Origin: Octopus sinensis
Lineage: Eukaryota
NCBI RefSeq assembly: GCF_006345805.1
Contig: NC_043003.1
Location: 92,256,001-92,320,000, forward strand
DNA length: 64,000 nucleotides
Reading direction: 5' to 3'
Shown here: positions 3,120 through 18,541 of the stretch, in pieces
How the letters are laid out: the number at the start of each line of letters is the position of its first letter
Numbering within the stretch: the first letter of the stretch is position 1
The notes under the pieces: model-generated
What the model saw: the letters and a program-made list of their open reading frames with translations, nothing else
What the model was told of the DNA's origin: nothing
Database searches by the model: none
Translations under genes and position numbers: made by a program

Positions 3120-3164
3120 ATTTGTTTACAAACCTGTTAGAGACGAACGAAACAATAAACACAT

Positions 3165-3426
3165 TGTGGTGTGATGGTGAGGGAGTGTGACGGATGGGGA
3201 GAGCGGAAGTGTGGCTTGCAGGGCTTTGCAGGGCGCATGCGCCGGCGGAAGCGGAAGTGACAGGCAGAACGCACGTGCGGCATCGAGCAGTTGACTCAGA
3301 CACGACGAAGACACGACACGAGCGAGTTGGCGAAAGGCGATCCAAGTTCATCTCCGGCTAGGTAAGACCCAATTGCATTCCATTCCTTCCTTGTTCTGTT
3401 GTACTCTTTTCACCATTCATACAACA
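3165..3426 (+). repeat. 5' LTR (262 bp)
   Basis: Direct repeat of 7150-7411 with 3 substitutions; begins TG, ends CA. Confidence 0.97.
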
Positions 3427-3438
3427 AGCTATTTCGGC
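3427..3438 (+). other. Putative non-canonical primer-binding site complementary to nt 1-12 of tRNA-Phe
   Basis: AGCTATTTCGGC abuts the LTR end; its reverse complement GCCGAAATAGCT is the 5' end of metazoan tRNA-Phe(GAA). No TGG-type PBS is present. Confidence 0.7.
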
Positions 3439-3554
3439 AAATAATCACTGGGACCGGCAAATAATCACTCGGTTTCGTAAAAATAAAAATAGAAAAATTA
3501 TGCAGAGTGCTATGGTTTCACGCGAGCCTATAACACCGTTTTGCGGCGACACCG

Positions 3555-4253
3555 ATGTGGTCGCTGGTTGAAGAGGTGAAGTTGGTGGCGAAGCTCCACG
3601 GTATAGCTGACCTGGCGAGTTTTATGCCGTTGTATTTGGATGGCCCGGCGTTGGCGTTATATTTAGAGATGGAGGAGACGGACCAACTCAGCGCAGATAA
3701 AGTGGAAATCCGACTTATGGAGGCCTTCGCGGAAGGAATGTTTGAAGCGTACGCTCGGCTGGGTAGAATGAGATGGACTGGGCAACAGGTGGACGTGTTC
3801 GCCGGTGAGCTTAGAAGGCTGGCTAAACTGGCGGGATATGAGGGAGAGTCGCTAGAACGGACGGTTAGGTTAGCGTTCGTGACCGGCTTTCCCGACATCA
3901 TGTCGGTCGAGCTACAGAAGCTCCCGAACGTGCGTTCGATGCCGATGGCCGATATCATATCGCGGGCACGTGTACTGGTTTCATGCAGCAGGTTGACGTC
4001 GGTAGCAGCGACTGTAACGTCGAAAAGTGGCCCAGCTAGGAGCAGCGGAGAGGGGCTGAGGAAAGAACGCGTGCGATCGTTCAAAGGACAGTGTTTCCGG
4101 TGCCAAGGCTCACACATGGTCCGTGACTGCGCGTCGCCCAAGCCTGAGGTGATTTGCTACCGGTGTCGAGAGCCGGGGCATGTAACCAGCGAGTGTCTGC
4201 GGGGAAACGGACCGCGGGAGACTACTGCGCCGGTAGTTGTCCCTTTGGACTAG
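3555..4253 (+). CDS. gag: Gag of the Gypsy element with two zinc knuckles
   Basis: 232-aa ORF with CFRCQGSHMVRDC and CYRCREPGHVTSEC. The true start is probably upstream (ATG 3500 or 3512) across small deletions near 3560-3573. Confidence 0.9.
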   Translation: MWSLVEEVKLVAKLHGIADLASFMPLYLDGPALALYLEMEETDQLSADKVEIRLMEAFAEGMFEAYARLGRMRWTGQQVDVFAGELRRLAKLAGYEGESLERTVRLAFVTGFPDIMSVELQKLPNVRSMPMADIISRARVLVSCSRLTSVAATVTSKSGPARSSGEGLRKERVRSFKGQCFRCQGSHMVRDCASPKPEVICYRCREPGHVTSECLRGNGPRETTAPVVVPLD

Positions 4254-7114
4254 TAGCGGCGCGTTTATCATCGCTACCTGTGGTCGACATTCTGGTGAAG
4301 GGGAAGATGTCGCGAGCCCTGGTGGACACGGGCTGTACGACGACCCTGATGACCACAGAAGTGGCAGAGACGTGGAGTGGAGGAAGCAGTGTTAGGGCAG
4401 TTGACGGAAGAGAAGTTCACTGCGAAGGGGTTACGGATGCGCAGATTGTGGTGCAGGGACTACAGCTGACGTTGCGAGCAATTGTGGTTGGTCACTTGGT
4501 GGACGAGATCGACGTGGTGATGGGGATGGATGCAATCACCCGTTTGGGAGGTGTCACCGTCAACGAGGCTGGCGTAACGTTTGGGTTAGCGGGGAAACCG
4601 TGTAGGGCGGGACCGCGCACCGACGACAACCGTGAGGAAAAGGATGCGGCGCACACCATTGAAGACCAGGATTTTCGGGCTGTCTTTGATGGCGAAAGGT
4701 GGACAGTGGAGTGGCACTGGAAGGGAGAGCCCCCGATGTTAAAGAATAAAGTGGGCTGCTATCAGCATACTCTAAAAGGAGATGCCAGAAGTGAGTTCGA
4801 GGGGGAGGTGGAGCGGTGGATTAAGGAGGGCATACTGATCCCCTGGGAAAAAGAAGAGAGCGGAGTCCTGCCACTGATGGCGGTGATACAGCCCACAAAG
4901 CGTAAGGTCAGGCCAGTGCTCGACTTCCGAGAGCTGAATGACCACGTGTCGTGTCATACAGGCGGCGAGGCCACGGATGTCTGCGGAGACACCTTGCGAG
5001 AGTGGAGGCAGCCGACGGGGGCCTCCACGATTGTCGATTTAAAGTCGGCATACCTTCAGGTGCATGTGGCTGAGAAACTATGGAAGTACCAGCTCGTCAG
5101 GTATAGGGGCCGGACGTACTGTCTGACCAGGTTGGGATTCGGGCTGAATTCAGCGCCGAAGATTATGGCAACAATTCTCAAGGCCATCCTGGGGAAGGTG
5201 GACAGAGTAAAAAGGGCCACCAATTCATACATCGACGACATTCTGGTGGATGAAACCGTGATACCAGCAACGGAGGTCATAGGCCATCTGAAGAGTTTTG
5301 GACTGATCGCCAAGCCGCCAGAGGCTATGGAGGGAGGTGCTGCACTGGGCCTCAAGCTATGGAGAGACAAGGCCGGCGCCTTGGTGTTCCGGCGAGGGAA
5401 TGAGGTCCCTGAACTGGGCGCCAGCATGAGTAGACGGGAACTGTTCTCTCTGTGTGGGAAGCTGGTGGGACACTACCCGATTGCAGGCTGGCTCCGGACA
5501 GCATGTAGCTTCATCAAGAGACGAGCCGAAGGAGTGAAGTGGAATGATAAAGTGGGGGAGAGGACGATCGACATGATGCAGGAAGTCTTGGTCAGAGTAG
5601 GAGCAGAGGACCCAGTGAGGGGCAGCTGGTATGTTCCCAAATCAAAGAGCGGAATCGTATGGTGTGACGCCAGTAGCATCGCAATAGGGGTTGTCTTGGA
5701 AGTGGGAGGTGTCACGGTGGAAGATGCGGCCTGGCTCAGGAAGATGGATGACTGCAATCATATCAACGTGGCGGAGTTGGATGCCGTGCTGAAGGGGGTG
5801 AACCTAGCCTTGAAGTGGGGGTTGCACACCATAGAAATCAGGACTGATTCGGCCACTGTACTTGGTTGGGCGACAGCAGTATTCACCGATGAGCGGAGGG
5901 TGCGGACCAAAGGGGCTGCAGAGATGCTGGTAAAGCGTCGATTAGGAATACTGCGTGAACTAACCACTGAGTTCAATCTGAGGCTGAGCGTGATCTTTGT
6001 GCCTTCCGAGAAGAACAGGGCAGACGTCCTGACCAGGGTAAAGCGAGCCTGGTTGCAGGTGCCAGAGGATGCGAAGCAGGATGTAGCTGCAGTATGCCGT
6101 CTGAGCGACTCGGAGTTACGGAGACTGCACACCATGCATCACATGGGTGTGGACAGGACATTGTTCCTAGCCAGAAAAGTTGACTCCGACGTAACAAGAC
6201 GGAGCGTGCAGAGAGTGGTTAGCAGTTGTGACAGGTGCCAGTCCATCGACCCTGCTCCGGTCGTGCATGAAGCGGGAAGTATTCCAGTGGACCAGGACTG
6301 GAGACGACTGGCGGTGGACATAACACACTACCGGCAGGGGACATACCTCTCAATGGTTGACTGCAGACCGGGGCGGTTCGCCATATGGAGGGAGATGAAG
6401 ACGGGAACCGCAGAAGAAATTGTGAAAGTGTTGAAGGAGATATTCCTGGAACGAGGCCCCGTGGATGAACTGCTTCTGGACAACGGCACTGCATTTCGCT
6501 CGGATGTGCTGAGAGAAATGCTTGATGAGGGGAAGGTCAACCGCTTCTTCAGGGCGGCATACCGGCCAAGTGGAAACGGGGTGGTGGAAAGGCATCATCG
6601 TACCATCAAGGCCATGGCAGAGAGGGGTCACATTTCACCAGTCGAGGCCGTGTTTTGGTACAATATGTCGCCCAGATCAGGACAGGCTGAGGAGTCGGTG
6701 CCACACAGGGCAATATTCAGGTACGAGTGGAGGCATCCGTGTACTACATCAAAGCGACCCGGGGCAGAGGAAGAGCACGCCTTCGTGCAGGTCGGGGAGG
6801 AAGTCTGGGTAAAACCCCCAAACGCACGGTGTACATCGCAATGGGGAAAGGGGACAATAACCTCCGTAAATTCAAAGAATAACATCTCGGTCGATGGTAT
6901 GCCACGCCACGTTTTGGACATACGGAGGATTGTCCATGCCCCAGAGGATGGGGCCAGCAGCAGTGGGCAAGACGAAAACAACAGACAGGATGACGAGGTC
7001 GGCAGCAACACACCAGAAACAAGTCCTAGGGTCGCACTGCGACCACAGAGGGAGCGGCACCCTCCTCCCTGGTTGGCTGATTATGAAACCAGTTTCAGGT
7101 GCGGGAGCGAGTGA
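4154..7114 (+). CDS. pol: Pol polyprotein (protease, RT, RNase H, integrase) in the -1 frame relative to gag
   Basis: Uninterrupted 986-codon ORF: LVDTGC protease; DLKSAYLQ and YIDDIL RT; CDAS/ELDA/TDS/ADVL RNase H; HHCC plus VDIT/LDNG/VERHH integrase. Confidence 0.96.
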   Translation: MLPVSRAGACNQRVSAGKRTAGDYCAGSCPFGLVAARLSSLPVVDILVKGKMSRALVDTGCTTTLMTTEVAETWSGGSSVRAVDGREVHCEGVTDAQIVVQGLQLTLRAIVVGHLVDEIDVVMGMDAITRLGGVTVNEAGVTFGLAGKPCRAGPRTDDNREEKDAAHTIEDQDFRAVFDGERWTVEWHWKGEPPMLKNKVGCYQHTLKGDARSEFEGEVERWIKEGILIPWEKEESGVLPLMAVIQPTKRKVRPVLDFRELNDHVSCHTGGEATDVCGDTLREWRQPTGASTIVDLKSAYLQVHVAEKLWKYQLVRYRGRTYCLTRLGFGLNSAPKIMATILKAILGKVDRVKRATNSYIDDILVDETVIPATEVIGHLKSFGLIAKPPEAMEGGAALGLKLWRDKAGALVFRRGNEVPELGASMSRRELFSLCGKLVGHYPIAGWLRTACSFIKRRAEGVKWNDKVGERTIDMMQEVLVRVGAEDPVRGSWYVPKSKSGIVWCDASSIAIGVVLEVGGVTVEDAAWLRKMDDCNHINVAELDAVLKGVNLALKWGLHTIEIRTDSATVLGWATAVFTDERRVRTKGAAEMLVKRRLGILRELTTEFNLRLSVIFVPSEKNRADVLTRVKRAWLQVPEDAKQDVAAVCRLSDSELRRLHTMHHMGVDRTLFLARKVDSDVTRRSVQRVVSSCDRCQSIDPAPVVHEAGSIPVDQDWRRLAVDITHYRQGTYLSMVDCRPGRFAIWREMKTGTAEEIVKVLKEIFLERGPVDELLLDNGTAFRSDVLREMLDEGKVNRFFRAAYRPSGNGVVERHHRTIKAMAERGHISPVEAVFWYNMSPRSGQAEESVPHRAIFRYEWRHPCTTSKRPGAEEEHAFVQVGEEVWVKPPNARCTSQWGKGTITSVNSKNNISVDGMPRHVLDIRRIVHAPEDGASSSGQDENNRQDDEVGSNTPETSPRVALRPQRERHPPPWLADYETSFRCGSE

Positions 7115-7141
7115 GGAAGCCGGTTCAGTGATCTATAGATC

Positions 7142-7149
7142 AGGGGGCG
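7142..7149 (+). other. Polypurine tract
   Basis: agggggcg immediately 5' of the 3' LTR. Confidence 0.7.
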
Positions 7150-7411
7150 TGTGGTGTGATGGTGAGGGAGTGTGACGGATGGGGAGAGCGGAAGTGGGGC
7201 TTGCAGGGCTTTGCAGGGCGCATGCGCCGGCGGAAACGGAAGTGACAGGCAGAACGCACGTGCGGCATCGAGCAGTTGACTCAGACACGACGAAGACACG
7301 ACACGAGCGAGTTGGCGAAAGGCGATCCAAGTTCATCTCCGGCTAGGTAAGACCCAATTGCATTCCATTCCTTCCTTGTTCTGTTGTACTCTTTTCACCA
7401 TTCATACTACA
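7150..7411 (+). repeat. 3' LTR (262 bp)
   Basis: Matches the 5' LTR at 259 of 262 positions; followed by the CACAT TSD. Confidence 0.97.
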
Positions 7412-8033
7412 CACATGAACAAAAAACATATGCAAATCTTTACGTAAAATGTAAATAATATTACCAGAACTGATATTCTTTAGGAAAAGTTTTAAAAGTG
7501 GATAAATCTTTCTGGGACACCCTATATATATATCAGAGAAAGAGAAAATGGAATTCACGAGATTCTTTACTAATCACTACAATCGTTTCAACCCATCGTC
7601 CATCGATCCCTCGTGGGTGAGATTCTGTACTACTGGTTGTGGTGCATTATTCGGTGCAGATGTGCCACATCAGGTGACTTTTCAGGATGTACTTCGTTCT
7701 TTAATCTCCGTTTCGTTTGCCTGTAGCTGGTAGCGTACAAGAGAGATCGTGATTTAAAATAATTTAGAATCAAGGACAGTTTTCTTATATGTAATGAACT
7801 TACTAACAATTAATCATAAATAAAATTCATATATAAGAATCAAAAAGAGAAAATAAAATAAGTATACAATGAGCAGATTAAACAGATACTGTGCTTGACA
7901 ATCGGTGTTAATATGTTTACGTCCGCGTAACTTAGTGGGTTCGTTAAAGAAAGGAAAGAATTAGGCTTAAAAATAAGTATTGGTTCCATTCGTTCGACTA
8001 AAATTCTTCAAAGTGGCGCCCCAGGATAGTTGT

Positions 8034-8133: not shown

Positions 8134-9584
8134 AGTGGATCTTGCAAACATGAAGTGGATTCGATCCACCATAGCCAAATTTAAATTAACACTGCAACAG
8201 AACTTTTCTCACGGTGGAACAATGGTCTTTCTCTGACAGCAGTTTTACATTTTCCAGATGCATTTAGCTAGGTCGAAATAATGTCCTCACCACTTGACCT
8301 TTTCTAATCTCTTCTACTTTACCAAAAGCTAGAATAGAGATAACAAGACCACCAACTGAATCTATTGTTTTCAATGATATATCTATCCTTCTGGATAGTT
8401 ATATAAGCATGCACTCCCCAAGCAAAAATCAGTTAGTCACAGTCGGTGACGACTCAACCAAGTAGTCACTACGGTGAAGACGAAGTATGGCTGACCAGCT
8501 AGAACTTTGGTCAGAGGGAGAAATGAAGTTTACTGTCAGCAACTGTGAGACAACACCCTACAATTCTCTCTAGCTCTAATTCGGTTCTCTTACAACATCA
8601 TTCTATTGCTATCTGCGGATTACTATCAACAATTTGTGTACGCCAAACTATGAAAAAAAAATCTACTACATCTAACTTTCTTTCGCATGCTTTCGGATGT
8701 TATAACCTGCCTGTCGAAGTATGGTCTTTTTCAACGTAACGGTAAATAAATATTTCTTTAAAACTTCATGCATTGTTCATCTTTCACATCCTACAGTAAG
8801 CACATTATAACAACTTTTTATCGTTACAACTGCTGACTTCGACATTTCATAATATTGTTTACTAATCTATTTCTCCTGCTACTATTGGTGACCCTCGACT
8901 TCAACTAAAACCTTCTCCCGTTACAGTTGGTGACCCTGAACAAGTGAATTGCAGCCTTCCCAATTACCAACAGTTACAAACTGGCGACCCGAACGTTGCA
9001 CCATAACAGGCATCGATACAAACATAAAACTTCATTGGTGAACCCGTGTAAAGAGAATTGATACATTCTGGTGCTAGATGCCGCTGCATTTTGCTGATTT
9101 GAACTAAAGAACTCCCATATCAACAGTCGCTAAACCAAAGGAAAAACAATGACAACCTTCGTCACCACCTAGATGCACGCTCCATCGACCTGCTACAGAA
9201 AGTACTATACTGGGATGCAATCAACGATGCACTTCACAACAATGCAACACTGCACAAGGCGTTTGCGGACCATGGAAGCCAATAAATGCATCATTTCAAC
9301 AGCTACATGCCCAGAAACTAACTGGAAGAAAATACGGAAGCCCGCACATGCAACCTTTTTGCTACGCACATGCTTTTCGTCTCGTCCCGACGTACAAACC
9401 CTGCATTGTTTATGAACTTTTGCCCTTAGATAAGACTCTCACATAGACTTTCAATAACTCTATTTCTTTGCATGCACATCTATTCATTTTCAGCTGTAGA
9501 CAAAGGGCATTATTTTCAGCTAAGTTCGTTATTTTCGCTTATTTTATTGTTCTTTTTTCACTGCACACTTTCATTTGTTTACGA

Positions 9585-9720
9585 GTTACACATTCCGCGA
9601 TGGACATATACCGCGATGCACACATTCCGCGATGCACACATTCCGAGATGCACACATACCGCAATGCACATATACCGCGATGCACACATTCCGCGAAGCA
9701 CACATTCCGCGATGCACAAA
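9585..9720 (+). repeat. 16-bp minisatellite (tgcacacattccgcga) x about 8
   Basis: Directly visible tandem array inside the LTR element interior. Confidence 0.95.
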
Positions 9721-11719
9721 TTCTATGACACGTTTCACTAAAACAGATAAATTCATGAGCATATCTTTTTGAATGTTCTTTATTATTATTCATATTTTGC
9801 ATGTACATTTTTTCGTTCACTTTGAAAATGTTTGTATTGTTGCATATACACACGTCTGCACCTTTCCTCAACGCCTGGCCTTGCGCACGATCTGCACACA
9901 TGATTCATACACACACAAATGCTATATCTGTCACAATGAAGCACCACACATGCCTGTCTCACTTGTTTTCTATGCTCAATGCACCCTTGTACACACAACT
10001 CATCTCCGTAAGACCCTAGGTCGGTCACATATACATAGAAGAACTTGTTTGTCCCTTACAATGCGCCAGCATAAAACACTTTTGTTCCTGCACGGTCGAG
10101 GCATATAATACCTCATGCACCAGCTGGCAGCCTCAGTCTTACTGCATTAATCACTAGCATATTCAATACTGTACACTGTATTTGTAATCAATACACTAGT
10201 CTCGCCTTGCAAGCCCTATTGCACATATGTACATGCAACTCTATCATGCATCTACTACCTTATTTTGCAACACGTCTGCATCAGCTCAATTCTTCTCCCG
10301 ACTCGAAGTAAGTCGGATGATCACATACTCTGCGCTCATGTTAAGACATAATTTCCCCCTCTTAGTCACATAATTAACAGAAAAAATGACATGTCTCACG
10401 CATCACTCCAGCATGCTAACACTGTCGTCCTTGCTAACTCAGCACGACAACTAATTCAGCACCAGACGCATTTTTCTACTGAAAAACATTCCAATGCATT
10501 TACCATGCATTTCTTTCTCTCCTTCAATCGTTCGTTTCCTTTCCAGGAACTTCAATGGCGAGAAGAGTGATGTAGTGGATCTCGCAAGCATGAAGTGGAT
10601 TCGATCCACCATAGCCAAATTTAAATTAACACTGCAACAGAACTTTTCCCACGGTGGAACAATGGTCTTTCTCTGACAGCAGTTTTACATTTTCCAGATG
10701 CCTTTAAGCTAGGTCGAAATAATGTCCTCATCACTTGACCCTTTCTAACCTCTTCTACTTTACCAAAAGCTAGAATAGAGATAACAAGACCACCAACTGA
10801 ATCTATTGTTTTCAATTATATATCTATCCTTCTGAATAGTTATATAAGCATGCACTCCCCAAGCAAAAATCAGTTAGTCACAGTCGGTGACGACTCAACC
10901 AAGTAGTCACAACGTGAGGACGAAGTATGGCTGACCAGCTAGAACTTTGGTCAGAGGGAGAAATGAAGTTTACTGTCAGTTACTGTGAGACAACACCCTA
11001 CAATTCTCTCTAGCTCTAATTCGGTTCTCTTACAACATCATTCTATCGCTATCTGCGGATTACTACCAACAATTTGTGTACGCCAAACCATAAAAAAAAA
11101 ATTCTACCACATCTAACTTTCTTTCGCATGCTCTCGGATGTTATAACCTGCCCGTCGAAGAATGGTCTTTTTCAACGTAACGGTAAATAAATATTTCTTT
11201 AAAACTTCATGCATTGTTCATCTTTCACATCCTACAGTAAGCACGTTATAACAACTTTTTATCGTCACAACTGCTGACTTCGACATTTCATAATATTGTT
11301 TACTAATCTATTTCTCCTGCTACTATTGGTGACCCTCGACTTCAACTAAAAGCTTTACCCGTTTCATATATATAATTATGTGCATGTGTGCGTGTATGTA
11401 TATATAATTCAATTGAAAGTAAGAGTTGTTTCACTTTCTGGAAAGTAGAAAACTGTTATTTCATTTTCAGTTTCTTGAGAATAAAAATATTATTTCTGAA
11501 TTCAACTAAACAAATATTGAAACAAAATATATTCATACACTTCAAATATCTCAGTTACCGAATAAAACAAAACTTACCCTATTTTTGGTAATAGGTCACT
11601 GTAGAAAATATCAAAACAAAAGGTCGAGTGGAGACACATTGTGTAGTTTATAAATATGGCAATTTAAAGTATCGTAAAGCATGAAGGTATTAGTAGCTTG
11701 TTTGTAGTGATGTATTAGA

Positions 11720-12408: not shown

Positions 12409-12826
12409 GTGGGTGTAAACACATGAACAAAATAAAAATAAACAAAAACAAAAACAAATTACCCGAACGTATATAAACGGAAGATACAAATATTACAGGC
12501 ATTTCCCCCCACACACACACTAACTAAACATAGACGCACATAGAGATATACGCATGCGCAAATGAAGACACATACAATAGAAATACAAAATGGCTGACAC
12601 ACAAATAAGAAAGAAGAAAGCAAAGGACCATTGATGCGGTCACAGGAGTGTGACGAAAGAACTCTGGCCGAAATAAGATTAAGATTAATGTAAAAAATAA
12701 ATAACACTGAAGCAAAGTAACACCAAATATATAGCACGTGTGTTTTTATTGGCTAAACTGGCAAAATGACCATTCCGAAATACAACAATATCTGTTTCAA
12801 CACACGATTTCACATAAAAATCTTGC

Positions 12827-12910
<84 letters not shown>

Positions 12911-13581
12911 TCATTCTTCATTCTTTCTGGTTTCCTCACAACCATTTCCTTTTTTCTCTCCCTTTCTCTTGCTCCTCCTCCTCCCTCCCGTCGTTGACCC
13001 GCGACGAGAGCTCTGCTACTGTCTTTCTGGCCTGACTTCCTTAAAGTGTGGACGGCATTTTCTGTTGCTCCTTCGCCGTTCTCAAAAATAGCGTTCATAA
13101 TAGCCCTTAACAGCCTTGTCTTGTTATTCTCCTAGTCCTGTCTTTTACTGTTTATATTTTGTACTGTCGTTTCTGTCCTGTTTTTGTTACCATTTTTACC
13201 CCACCGCAAAAAGATCTCAAATTTTATTTAATTTGCTTTTCGCGGGAAGGAAGGTTTCTATCGAAGATGCGTATCGCCTTCACCTTCGAAACGTAGAGTA
13301 GATGAAACCATGGCGACTGAAGAAGAAGACTGATATTTTTCCTGTAATCTATATTTTGTTGTTTAAGAAAAATGTCCAGTTCCTTGGTTTTGTCTTTATG
13401 TTTTCGTTTCTCCTTGTGTTCGACGTTTTTTTGTGTCCCGTACCTATATATGCGTGTATATATACATGTAGAGGTAGGTACGTACATATATGTATGTATA
13501 TATGCATATGTTTTATTTATTAATTTATGATATATATATAATATATATATAATATATAATATATACATATATTAATACATA

Positions 13582-13657
<76 letters not shown>

Positions 13658-13658
<1 letters not shown>

Positions 13659-14171
13659 TAGCAGTATCGCCCGGCGTTGCTCGGGTTTGTAAGGGAAATA
13701 ACTATATAGCATTTTTAGAGAGTTACTTCCCTTATAGATGCCAATTCGGGCTTTCTTAGCCATTTCTGTTTTGGTGTCTTCAAGCCATGAAGTCGTTGTT
13801 CTAAAAGAACGCTGGTCTCCTTGACAACGCTTTACGACGTTGATTTCCTTACACTCCCTTCCCCATAGCTTCACGAGGGAGGGAAGAAGTGGGAGAAGCA
13901 AACAGGTGCAGGTGTGACCATGGACGCCAACTCCGCCGCCATCGACACACGAAAAATTATGCATTAAAATGGAATTAAAAAATGATGTTAAATTATTTTT
14001 AAAATCGTAGACTCATCGTAGACGCGCGCTAATACCCAGAAGGGCTCGATATGGATCACGACTATAAGATACCCGAATTGGTTAAACTGCACCGCAAAAT
14101 GTGGGGAGAGTAGTTAGGAATCTAAATCGAAGGGGACAGACACTCACACAACTACAGTTTATATATATAGA
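13658..14171 (-). mobile_element. Non-autonomous Helitron
   Basis: Minus strand begins TC and ends CTAG with a subterminal hairpin cccgagcaacgccggg. Homologous to 40077-40473. Confidence 0.82.
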
Positions 14172-14191
14172 ATATATACACATATATATAC

Positions 14192-14222
<31 letters not shown>

Positions 14223-14244
14223 GATATATATATATAGATATATA

Positions 14245-14275
<31 letters not shown>

Positions 14276-15012
14276 CATATATATATACATATATATATAG
14301 ATATATATATACATATTTATAATATATACAATATGATATATAACACATTATTACACACAACACACATACACACACACAGACACACACACACACACAACAT
14401 ACACACCACACACCACACACACACACACACACAACACACACACACACACACATTATATATATATTATATATATATATATATCTTATACATATAATCTGCT
14501 TAAGAAATATATTAATTTTAAAAATTATTTCATAAAATTGCTCTTGCCCATTCTGAATCTCTGATATTAAAAACAAAAACAAAAAGATAAAATATAAAAT
14601 GCGTAAAATAGTTTTTTTCTTTCGAAAAATATATAAAGGAAACGTAATATGAATGCTATTTACAAACGCCTATCTGATCTTAATCTATTTTGAAATATCT
14701 TGTAAAATTCTTGAAATGTCCGTAACACCTACCGTAAATTTTACAAACAAAGCACCAGTGCCATTGTGAACACTGCCAACACCACTACCACCATTTATCC
14801 CCAGTCACACCTCAACCATAAGCGTCACAAACAAGTCAGAAACAGCACCAAACGTCTAGCAACAACGACACCACCTTGTAGGTACTTAGAGGAGCGTTTT
14901 AAAAATAGAGCCCTTACATAAACTTACTGGATCTGCCAGATATTCCAAACAAATCATTCTTGAATAAAATCCTGCTGTTTTGGTAATTGAAATGACGTAT
15001 TACATTATATAT

Positions 15013-17492: not shown

Positions 17493-17558
<66 letters not shown>

Positions 17559-17584
17559 AAAACCCCACCATTTATTGATTTGTA

Positions 17585-17617
<33 letters not shown>

Positions 17618-17618
17618 T

Positions 17619-17662
<44 letters not shown>

Positions 17663-17727
17663 ATATATATATATATATATATATTGCATATATATATATA
17701 ACACACATTTGTATATATATGTATATG

Positions 17728-17774
<47 letters not shown>

Positions 17775-17787
17775 TTATGTATATAAC

Positions 17788-18166
17788 TTCTTTTATTCTT
17801 TTACTTGTTTCAGTCATTTGACAGTGGCCATGCTGGAACATTGCCTTTAGTCGAAGAAATCGACCCCAGGACTTATTCCTTGTTAGCCTAGTACTTATTC
17901 TATTGGTTTCTTTTACCGAACCGCTAATTCGCCGGGACGTAACCACACCAACATCGGTTGTCAAGTGATGTTGGGAGGACAAGCACACACACACACACAC
18001 ACACACACATGCGACAGGCTTCTTTCGATTTCCGTCTACCAAATCCACTCACAAAGCTTTGGACGGTCCGAGAGTATAGTAGAAGACACTTGTCCGTGAT
18101 GTCACGCAGTGAGAGTGAACCCGGTACCATGAGGTTGGAAAGCAAGCTTCTTATCACATAGCCCTG
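17788..18166 (-). mobile_element. tRNA-derived SINE family B (CORE-like central block)
   Basis: Minus-strand tRNA-like head at ~18100-18166 and caagtgtcttctactata block. Homologous copies at 37812-38070, 47403-47690, 7895-8030 and 29905-29980. Confidence 0.8.
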
Positions 18167-18178
18167 CCTATATATGTA

Positions 18179-18252
<74 letters not shown>

Positions 18253-18541
18253 TACAGACATACGCACATATATATATACACACATGTATGTATGTGTGTG
18301 CGTGTGTGTGTGTATACTCATTTATGACTGTCAGTTACTTGACATTTCACGAATATCTTTAAGCTATTGGCAAATTTCTCGGAAAAGGCGTTGACTGAGA
18401 AGCTTTTTGTAATAGTCGCTTTACACATAACAAGTTTTTATTTCTAGAATGAAGGTCTATAATTGTGGTATTTCTCTTCACACTGGTGCAGACACACATA
18501 TATAAGTATATGCATGAATATGTATATATATTGAGCAGAGA

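Follow-up and report, generated by a model that had tools for sequence, protein, structure and literature searches.

Structure of the element and its surroundings

A complete LTR retrotransposon was identified at positions 3165-7411 of the window (the whole 64-kb stretch of DNA that was analysed). The 5' LTR (3165-3426, plus strand) and the 3' LTR (7150-7411, plus strand) were 262 bp each, differed at 3 positions and read TGTGG...ACAACA, with TG...CA ends. Both were flanked by the 5-bp target-site duplication (TSD) CACAT, at 3160-3164 on the left and 7412-7416 on the right. The window held only this one copy and no solo LTR. The internal part comprised a gag gene of 232 aa (3555-4253, plus strand) with one CCHC zinc knuckle (aa 200-214) and a pol open frame of 986 aa (4154-7114, plus strand) in the -1 frame relative to gag. 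A candidate -1 frameshift heptamer, G GGA AAC, was present in the gag frame at 4202-4208, inside the gag/pol overlap and positioned correctly for slippage, although its function is inferred. No record matching gag was found, the large ORFs of the window gave no informative Pfam hits and an Rfam search of the window found nothing. A 207-aa antisense ORF with a TTG start (3518-4141, minus strand) overlapped most of gag and is probably spurious.

Pfam hits and the secondary structure of an AlphaFold2 model (mean pLDDT 72) gave the pol domain order as protease (4283-4543), RT (4736-5323), thumb (Pfam DUF7047, 5429-5608), RNase H (5648-5998) and integrase (6116-6628). Residues at the positions of the expected RT, RNase H and integrase catalytic motifs were invariant in an alignment of 25 homologues and present in this copy, while the protease Asp (D58) was nearly invariant. 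Downstream of pol, the perfect palindrome GATCTATAGATC (7130-7141) was followed by the polypurine tract AGGGGG (7142-7147), 28 nt after the pol stop and abutting the 3' LTR. The form GATC-N-GATCA-G(n) recurred in six of nine relatives whose polypurine tract was read, and was seen before the 3' LTR in the related loci L002-L005 and L021.

The first base after the 5' LTR started the 12-mer AGCTATTTCGGC (3427-3438, plus strand), which occurred once in the window even when one mismatch was allowed on either strand. The LTR boundaries are firm and the 12-mer is therefore internal sequence that begins at the first base after U5. A human qPCR primer (PMC10505166) and a Drosophila northern probe (PMC7038984) both showed that tRNA-Phe(GAA) begins GCCGAAATAGCTCAGTTGGGAG, and the 12-mer is the exact reverse complement of its nt 1-12. 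The tRNA-Phe of the host itself is assumed here from human-Drosophila conservation, as no tRNA gene was found in the window. tRNA nt 13-15 (CAG) would need CTG at -3 to -1 whereas the LTR ends ACA, so pairing stops at the LTR edge, as the earlier note had stated. No TGG-type primer-binding site (PBS) was found next to the LTR, and the closest match to a conventional tRNA-Phe PBS (TGGTGCCGAAAC) was inside gag with 2 mismatches. The leader after the site carried a 14-nt direct repeat, GGCAAATAATCACT (3436-3449 and 3456-3469, 20 nt apart), of which the first copy overlapped the last 3 bases of the site. This repeat was not seen in relatives, whose leaders were often only 0-30 nt long.

A second LTR element without a long ORF was found at 8134-11366. 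Its direct repeats of ~792 bp (8134-8925 and 10574-11366) were 96-97% identical and flanked about 1.65 kb. Two bases after its left repeat (...TTACA gt) came TGGTGACCCTGAAC, an ordinary TGG-type PBS, and the same genome therefore also hosts conventionally primed elements. In addition, TGGTGCCGAACCCTG at 1709-1723 resembled the reverse complement of the tRNA-Phe 3' end (TGGTGCCGAAACCCGG) with one base missing, and may be a relic of a conventional tRNA-Phe PBS or of a tRNA-derived repeat. Arrays of degenerate short-period repeats with spacings of 8, 10, 12 and 17 nt were present at 1430-1611, 12800-14376 and 17493-18319, with the same repeat family scattered over several places.

Conservation of the 12-base site in related elements

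The pol protein had about 700 strong homologues at 49-65% identity. The named ones came from Argonauta hians (GCA_054771915.1), Petrolisthes manimaculis (GCA_034508575.1) and Oratosquilla oratoria (GCA_046742065.1), while most of the rest came from environmental or run-level assemblies on contigs of about 4 kb. A search of IMG/VR returned no relatives. Eight loci were fetched by pol protein identity alone, so that the choice could not be biased by the site, and their LTRs were located by self-alignment. All eight had AGCTAT-NNN-GGC as the first 12 bases after the 5' LTR, a position whose conservation had been proposed beforehand as a test. Argonauta carried AGCTATTTCGGC, as in the window. Petrolisthes, two Oratosquilla copies on different chromosomes, two copies of a further family and one more family carried AGCTATCTAGGC, and one family carried AGCTATCCCGGC. 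TSDs were 5 bp in these elements (L001-L003, L005 and L093-L095) except in L004, where none could be read, and their LTRs were 97-100% identical. The set included second copies at other genomic sites with different TSDs and LTRs of 98.7-100% identity, and the elements therefore transposed recently with this site. Neighbouring genes of other retroelement types, a BEL/Pao-like DUF1759 gag (L094, 1-1697) and an Integrase_H2C2 gene (L005, 7958-8955), were found next to CTA-type elements (those with CTA at the three variable positions), and the PBS sequences of these neighbours could reveal host tRNA acceptor stems.

A metagenome scan gave 76 further loci, and the motif was present in 31 of them, always on the pol strand. 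Over all 84 loci (312 kb) the motif occurred 40 times on the sense strand against 1.2 expected and 0 times on the antisense strand, and in 36 of the 40 it was preceded by CA. Three more loci carried one- or two-base variants at the same place. Most loci without the motif were short contigs that did not reach the junction, and in six divergent or degenerate loci the LTR/leader junction could not be located. Many contigs were circular permutations with terminal overlaps, as expected when two identical LTRs collapse in assembly. The contigs of L007-L013, L016, L020, L022, L029, L034 and L035, about 4 kb in length, began and ended with the same 99-840 nt and thus assembled as circles carrying a single LTR. 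This is most simply such an assembly collapse, but would also fit one-LTR circles or tandem copies.

In 31 distinct elements, information content was high only at -3 to -1 (ACA, the integrase end) and at +1 to +12, and fell below 0.5 bit at +13. The nine pattern positions were fixed by the way the 31 were selected, but the sharp edges and the eight unselected loci were not. Only positions 7-9 of the site, corresponding to tRNA positions 4-6, varied, with counts of TTC 11, CGC 9, CAC 5, CTA 3, CCC 2 and CCG 1 in that set, and CTA rose to four families when further protein-fetched loci were added. Position 7 was only T or C and position 9 was C in 27 of 31. On a neighbour-joining tree of the RT-RNase H core the types were interspersed, and TTC appeared in at least four separate clades. 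Distinct elements from one sample or host mostly shared a type, although two sample sets held both CAC and CGC types. CTA was seen in four families, two of them from named crustacean genomes, CGC three times in one soil sample, and TTC in all four loci from one related set of ENA assemblies. The type therefore seems to follow the sample or host rather than the element lineage.

Candidate primers and comparison with other retroelements

Read as a primer, the site gives GCC-NNN-AUAGCU, in which G1 C2 C3 and A7 U8 A9 G10 C11 U12 are constant and acceptor-stem positions 4-6 vary. This is how the 5' ends of related tRNAs differ from one another. Searches of the literature with the primer sequences found only tRNA-Phe and, for the CCG type, the start of human tRNA-Lys3, whereas four of the six types (primers GCCUAGAUAGCU, GCCGCGAUAGCU, GCCGUGAUAGCU and GCCGGGAUAGCU) matched no tRNA among those that could be checked. 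Crustacean tRNA-Phe is expected, from human-Drosophila identity, to start GCCGAAAUAGCU and would mismatch the crustacean CTA sites at two positions, so that either another crustacean tRNA is used or mismatches are tolerated. A scan of viral contigs returned phage Thr, Val and Phe tRNAs with the pattern GCC-NNN-ATAGCTCAG..., which is uninformative for eukaryotic hosts but shows that the 12-mer alone does not name an isoacceptor. ARAGORN on 69 loci (L001-L061 and six others) found only one tRNA, a tRNA-Val(CAC) gene at 1595-1667 of L003 (Oratosquilla oratoria), about 195 bp upstream of the 5' LTR of the element and on the opposite strand. No tRNA gene lay near the other full copies or in the window, so there was no sign of general pol III targeting.

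The earlier note had also proposed that GGGACC at about 3451 could pair with GGUCCC of the same tRNA. This was rejected, as the GGGACC was not conserved and the longest helices between tRNA-Phe nt 13-76 (with an assumed sequence for this remainder of the tRNA) and U5 or the leader were 7-11 nt, at inconsistent places, and no better in TTC-type than in control elements. Mimicry of the tRNA 3' acceptor strand plus discriminator was likewise rejected because the base at +13 was not conserved.

The note had called the element Gypsy, which is only loosely right. The PR-RT-RH-IN order, the TG...CA ends and the 5-bp TSD (4-6 bp being expected) agree with Ty3/Gypsy (Metaviridae) elements, but the lineage is divergent. 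RVT_1 scored 24.5 bits against a cut-off of 29.6, the integrase hit was also below its gathering cut-off and RT_RNaseH families were not hit. Sequence searches of the PDB listed only retroviral RT and integrase chains, with no Ty3 chain among these matches, and Foldseek against the PDB was not discriminating. The retroviral matches suggested the Odin group of sea anemones, which is sister to lokiretroviruses (PMC9040795). Like the present element, Odin elements are compact gag-pol animal elements without env and with PR-RT-RH-IN order. However, Odin has a tether domain (a degenerate RNase H) between the RT thumb and an acquired second RNase H, whereas in the model the catalytic YIDD is at aa 359-362, the thumb helices at 427-485 and the RNase H fold, directly following, at 499-615. 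About 135 aa separate YIDD from RNase H, which by comparison with HIV-1 RT (~250 aa) appears too short to hold a tether. The absence of the Odin feature thus rests on a model only. In addition, Odin was reported only from Actiniaria, while the present family is in cephalopods, crustaceans and many metagenomes. Troyka, with CG...CG termini and 3-bp TSDs (PMC12440569), is excluded by the termini and TSDs found here.

Three modes of priming have been described, namely the tRNA 3' end, the anticodon-region 5' half of a tRNA (copia, Ty5, Tca2) and self-priming (the Tf1 group). The canonical retroviral and Ty3 PBS has the same position next to U5, a host tRNA as partner and the same LTR anatomy with TG..CA ends, a 5-bp TSD and a polypurine tract. 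Here, however, there is no TGG start and the opposite strand of the acceptor stem would be used, the element RNA having the same sense as the tRNA 3' acceptor strand (UUUCGGC) instead of being complementary to it. In copia, Ty5 and Candida Tca2/pCal, a cleaved 5' part of a host tRNA rather than its CCA end also supplies the primer, but the PBS pairs with the anticodon stem-loop region at the 3' end of a fragment of about 39 nt, usually from initiator tRNA-Met. The present site is complementary to the extreme 5' end (nt 1-12), no conserved complementarity to tRNA-Phe nt 13-76 was found near it, and the cut would lie in the D stem, giving a primer about one third as long. Tf1, Tf2, Tj1 and the sushi group share a short PBS (11 nt against 12 nt) directly after U5 with no TGG start, and a primer 3' end that must be created by an endonucleolytic cut at the end of an RNA:RNA duplex, made in Tf1 by the RNase H domain (PMC4600332 and its references 14-17). 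In Tf1 the primer is the first 11 nt of the element's own mRNA, so site and primer co-vary within each element. In the six elements tested here, the best match of the primer sequence in the LTR or elsewhere in the element was 7-9 of 12, which is at chance level, and the site was held constant across distant elements in a tRNA-like pattern, which makes the partner a host RNA acting in trans. No published description of a PBS complementary to a tRNA 5' end was found, which is weak evidence as the literature searched lacked most older retrotransposon papers. The Odin paper does not mention PBS, primer or tRNA, the Troyka paper does not mention primers and the BEL/Pao survey does not mention PBS at all.

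Interpretation of the site as a putative primer-binding site

Overall, the observation made in the earlier note, a 12-mer directly after the 5' LTR complementary to tRNA-Phe nt 1-12, was confirmed and holds across the family. Its interpretation, that the family primes with a 12-nt 5' tRNA-Phe fragment perhaps cut by its own RNase H, was only partly supported, since the primer is not always tRNA-Phe-like and the cut remains a reasonable analogy with Tf1. The reading considered more likely than not is that the 12-mer is the minus-strand PBS of a structurally intact element. In this view, the site in the genomic RNA would anneal to the 5'-terminal 12 nucleotides of a host tRNA (acceptor-stem strand 1-7, U8, A9 and the first three bases of the D stem), which in this host and in Argonauta would be tRNA-Phe(GAA), with a predicted duplex energy of -18.7 kcal/mol. 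A primer needs a paired 3'-OH next to U5, so the tRNA must be cut between U12 and C13 or a pre-made 12-nt 5' fragment must be used, after which RT would extend into U5-R. The most likely cutter would be the RNase H of the element acting on the RNA:RNA duplex, as in Tf1 and Tj1 but applied in trans to a host tRNA, with the Gag zinc knuckle helping to unwind the tRNA. RNase H-type cuts leave a 3'-OH, whereas angiogenin-type tRNA cuts leave a cyclic phosphate that cannot prime, and this favours the element's own enzyme. The 5' end of the tRNA would set the far edge of the site, as plus-strand strong-stop synthesis can copy the primer only as far as G1, which would explain why conservation stops sharply at +12. 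The three variable bases probably track whichever host tRNA is used. The analysis itself established the anatomy, the exact complementarity, the family-wide conservation and the absence of other primer sites, whereas the annealing, the cut, the nuclease and the identity of the tRNAs for the non-TTC types are inferred from sequence alone. Moreover, 12-nt 5' tRNA fragments are not a recognised abundant class and a cut inside the D stem is unusual.

Among the alternatives, it is possible but unlikely that the site is the PBS and the primer, rather than being cut from a mature tRNA by the element, is a pre-existing host small RNA ending ...AUAGCU-3'OH, such as a trimmed 5' tRNA fragment, or another pol III transcript with a tRNA-like 5' end, such as a tRNA-derived SINE RNA. 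The anatomy fits this equally well, the 12-mer does not identify a single RNA species and several variant types matched no tRNA that could be checked. However, the sharp end of conservation at +12 implies a primer whose 5' end is G1, as in a mature tRNA, exact matches to tRNA-Phe and tRNA-Lys3 starts exist, and the known 5' tRNA fragments are 14 nt or longer and many carry cyclic-phosphate ends that cannot prime. Somewhat less likely still, tRNA-Phe may serve all elements while the middle three positions tolerate mismatches and drift, because the PBS is inherited from the template rather than recopied from the primer, in which case the variants would say nothing about host tRNAs. The six 3'-terminal and three 5' primer bases pair in every type, tRNA-Phe still gave -10 to -14 kcal/mol on the variant sites, and Ty1 and Ty3 are reported to inherit the PBS strictly from the template (PMC7472051). 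Drift should nevertheless give many types, and only six were seen, shared by unrelated elements and largely consistent within samples and hosts.

A role of the 12-mer as a packaging or dimerisation signal, a protein-binding site or a translation element, with coincidental tRNA complementarity and priming by some other way, is improbable. AGCU is self-complementary, the leader is very short so that signals must be packed close to U5, and the link of the site to priming rests on sequence alone. On the other hand, no other candidate primer site was found, the block begins exactly at the LTR edge where a PBS must be, its length is close to the 11 nt of Tf1, its invariant and variable positions follow tRNA 5'-end architecture and it matches tRNA-Phe at 12 of 12 positions. 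Finally, Tf1-type self-priming, which site length and the lack of a TGG PBS might suggest, is refuted at the sequence level by the absence of a self-complement in the six elements tested. A self-primer would also co-vary freely, yet 9 of 12 bases were fixed across elements whose pol proteins share only 37-63% identity with that of the window.

How reverse transcription is primed is a defining trait of retroelement lineages and only a few modes are known. It remains possible, at somewhat less than even likelihood, that a widespread and still active lineage of LTR retrotransposons, found in named cephalopod and crustacean genomes and in marine, freshwater and soil metagenomes, starts reverse transcription from the 5'-terminal 12 nucleotides of host tRNAs, tRNA-Phe in this host and Argonauta and other tRNAs elsewhere, with the primer made by a cut in the D stem, probably by the element's own RNase H. 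This would be a fourth, undescribed priming mode and a trans-acting counterpart of the Tf1 mechanism, linking tRNA priming with Tf1-style primer cutting. The system looks easy to test, as the site is only 12 nt and its partner in this host is a very well studied tRNA. Standard LTR annotation tools look for complementarity to tRNA 3' ends and would report these elements as lacking a PBS. A PBS read from the 5' end of a tRNA would also give 5' tRNA ends or fragments a direct role in retroelement replication. Host 3'-tRNA-fragment silencing aimed at PBS sequences would not recognise this site, whereas 5' fragments would be perfectly complementary to it and could either prime or block.
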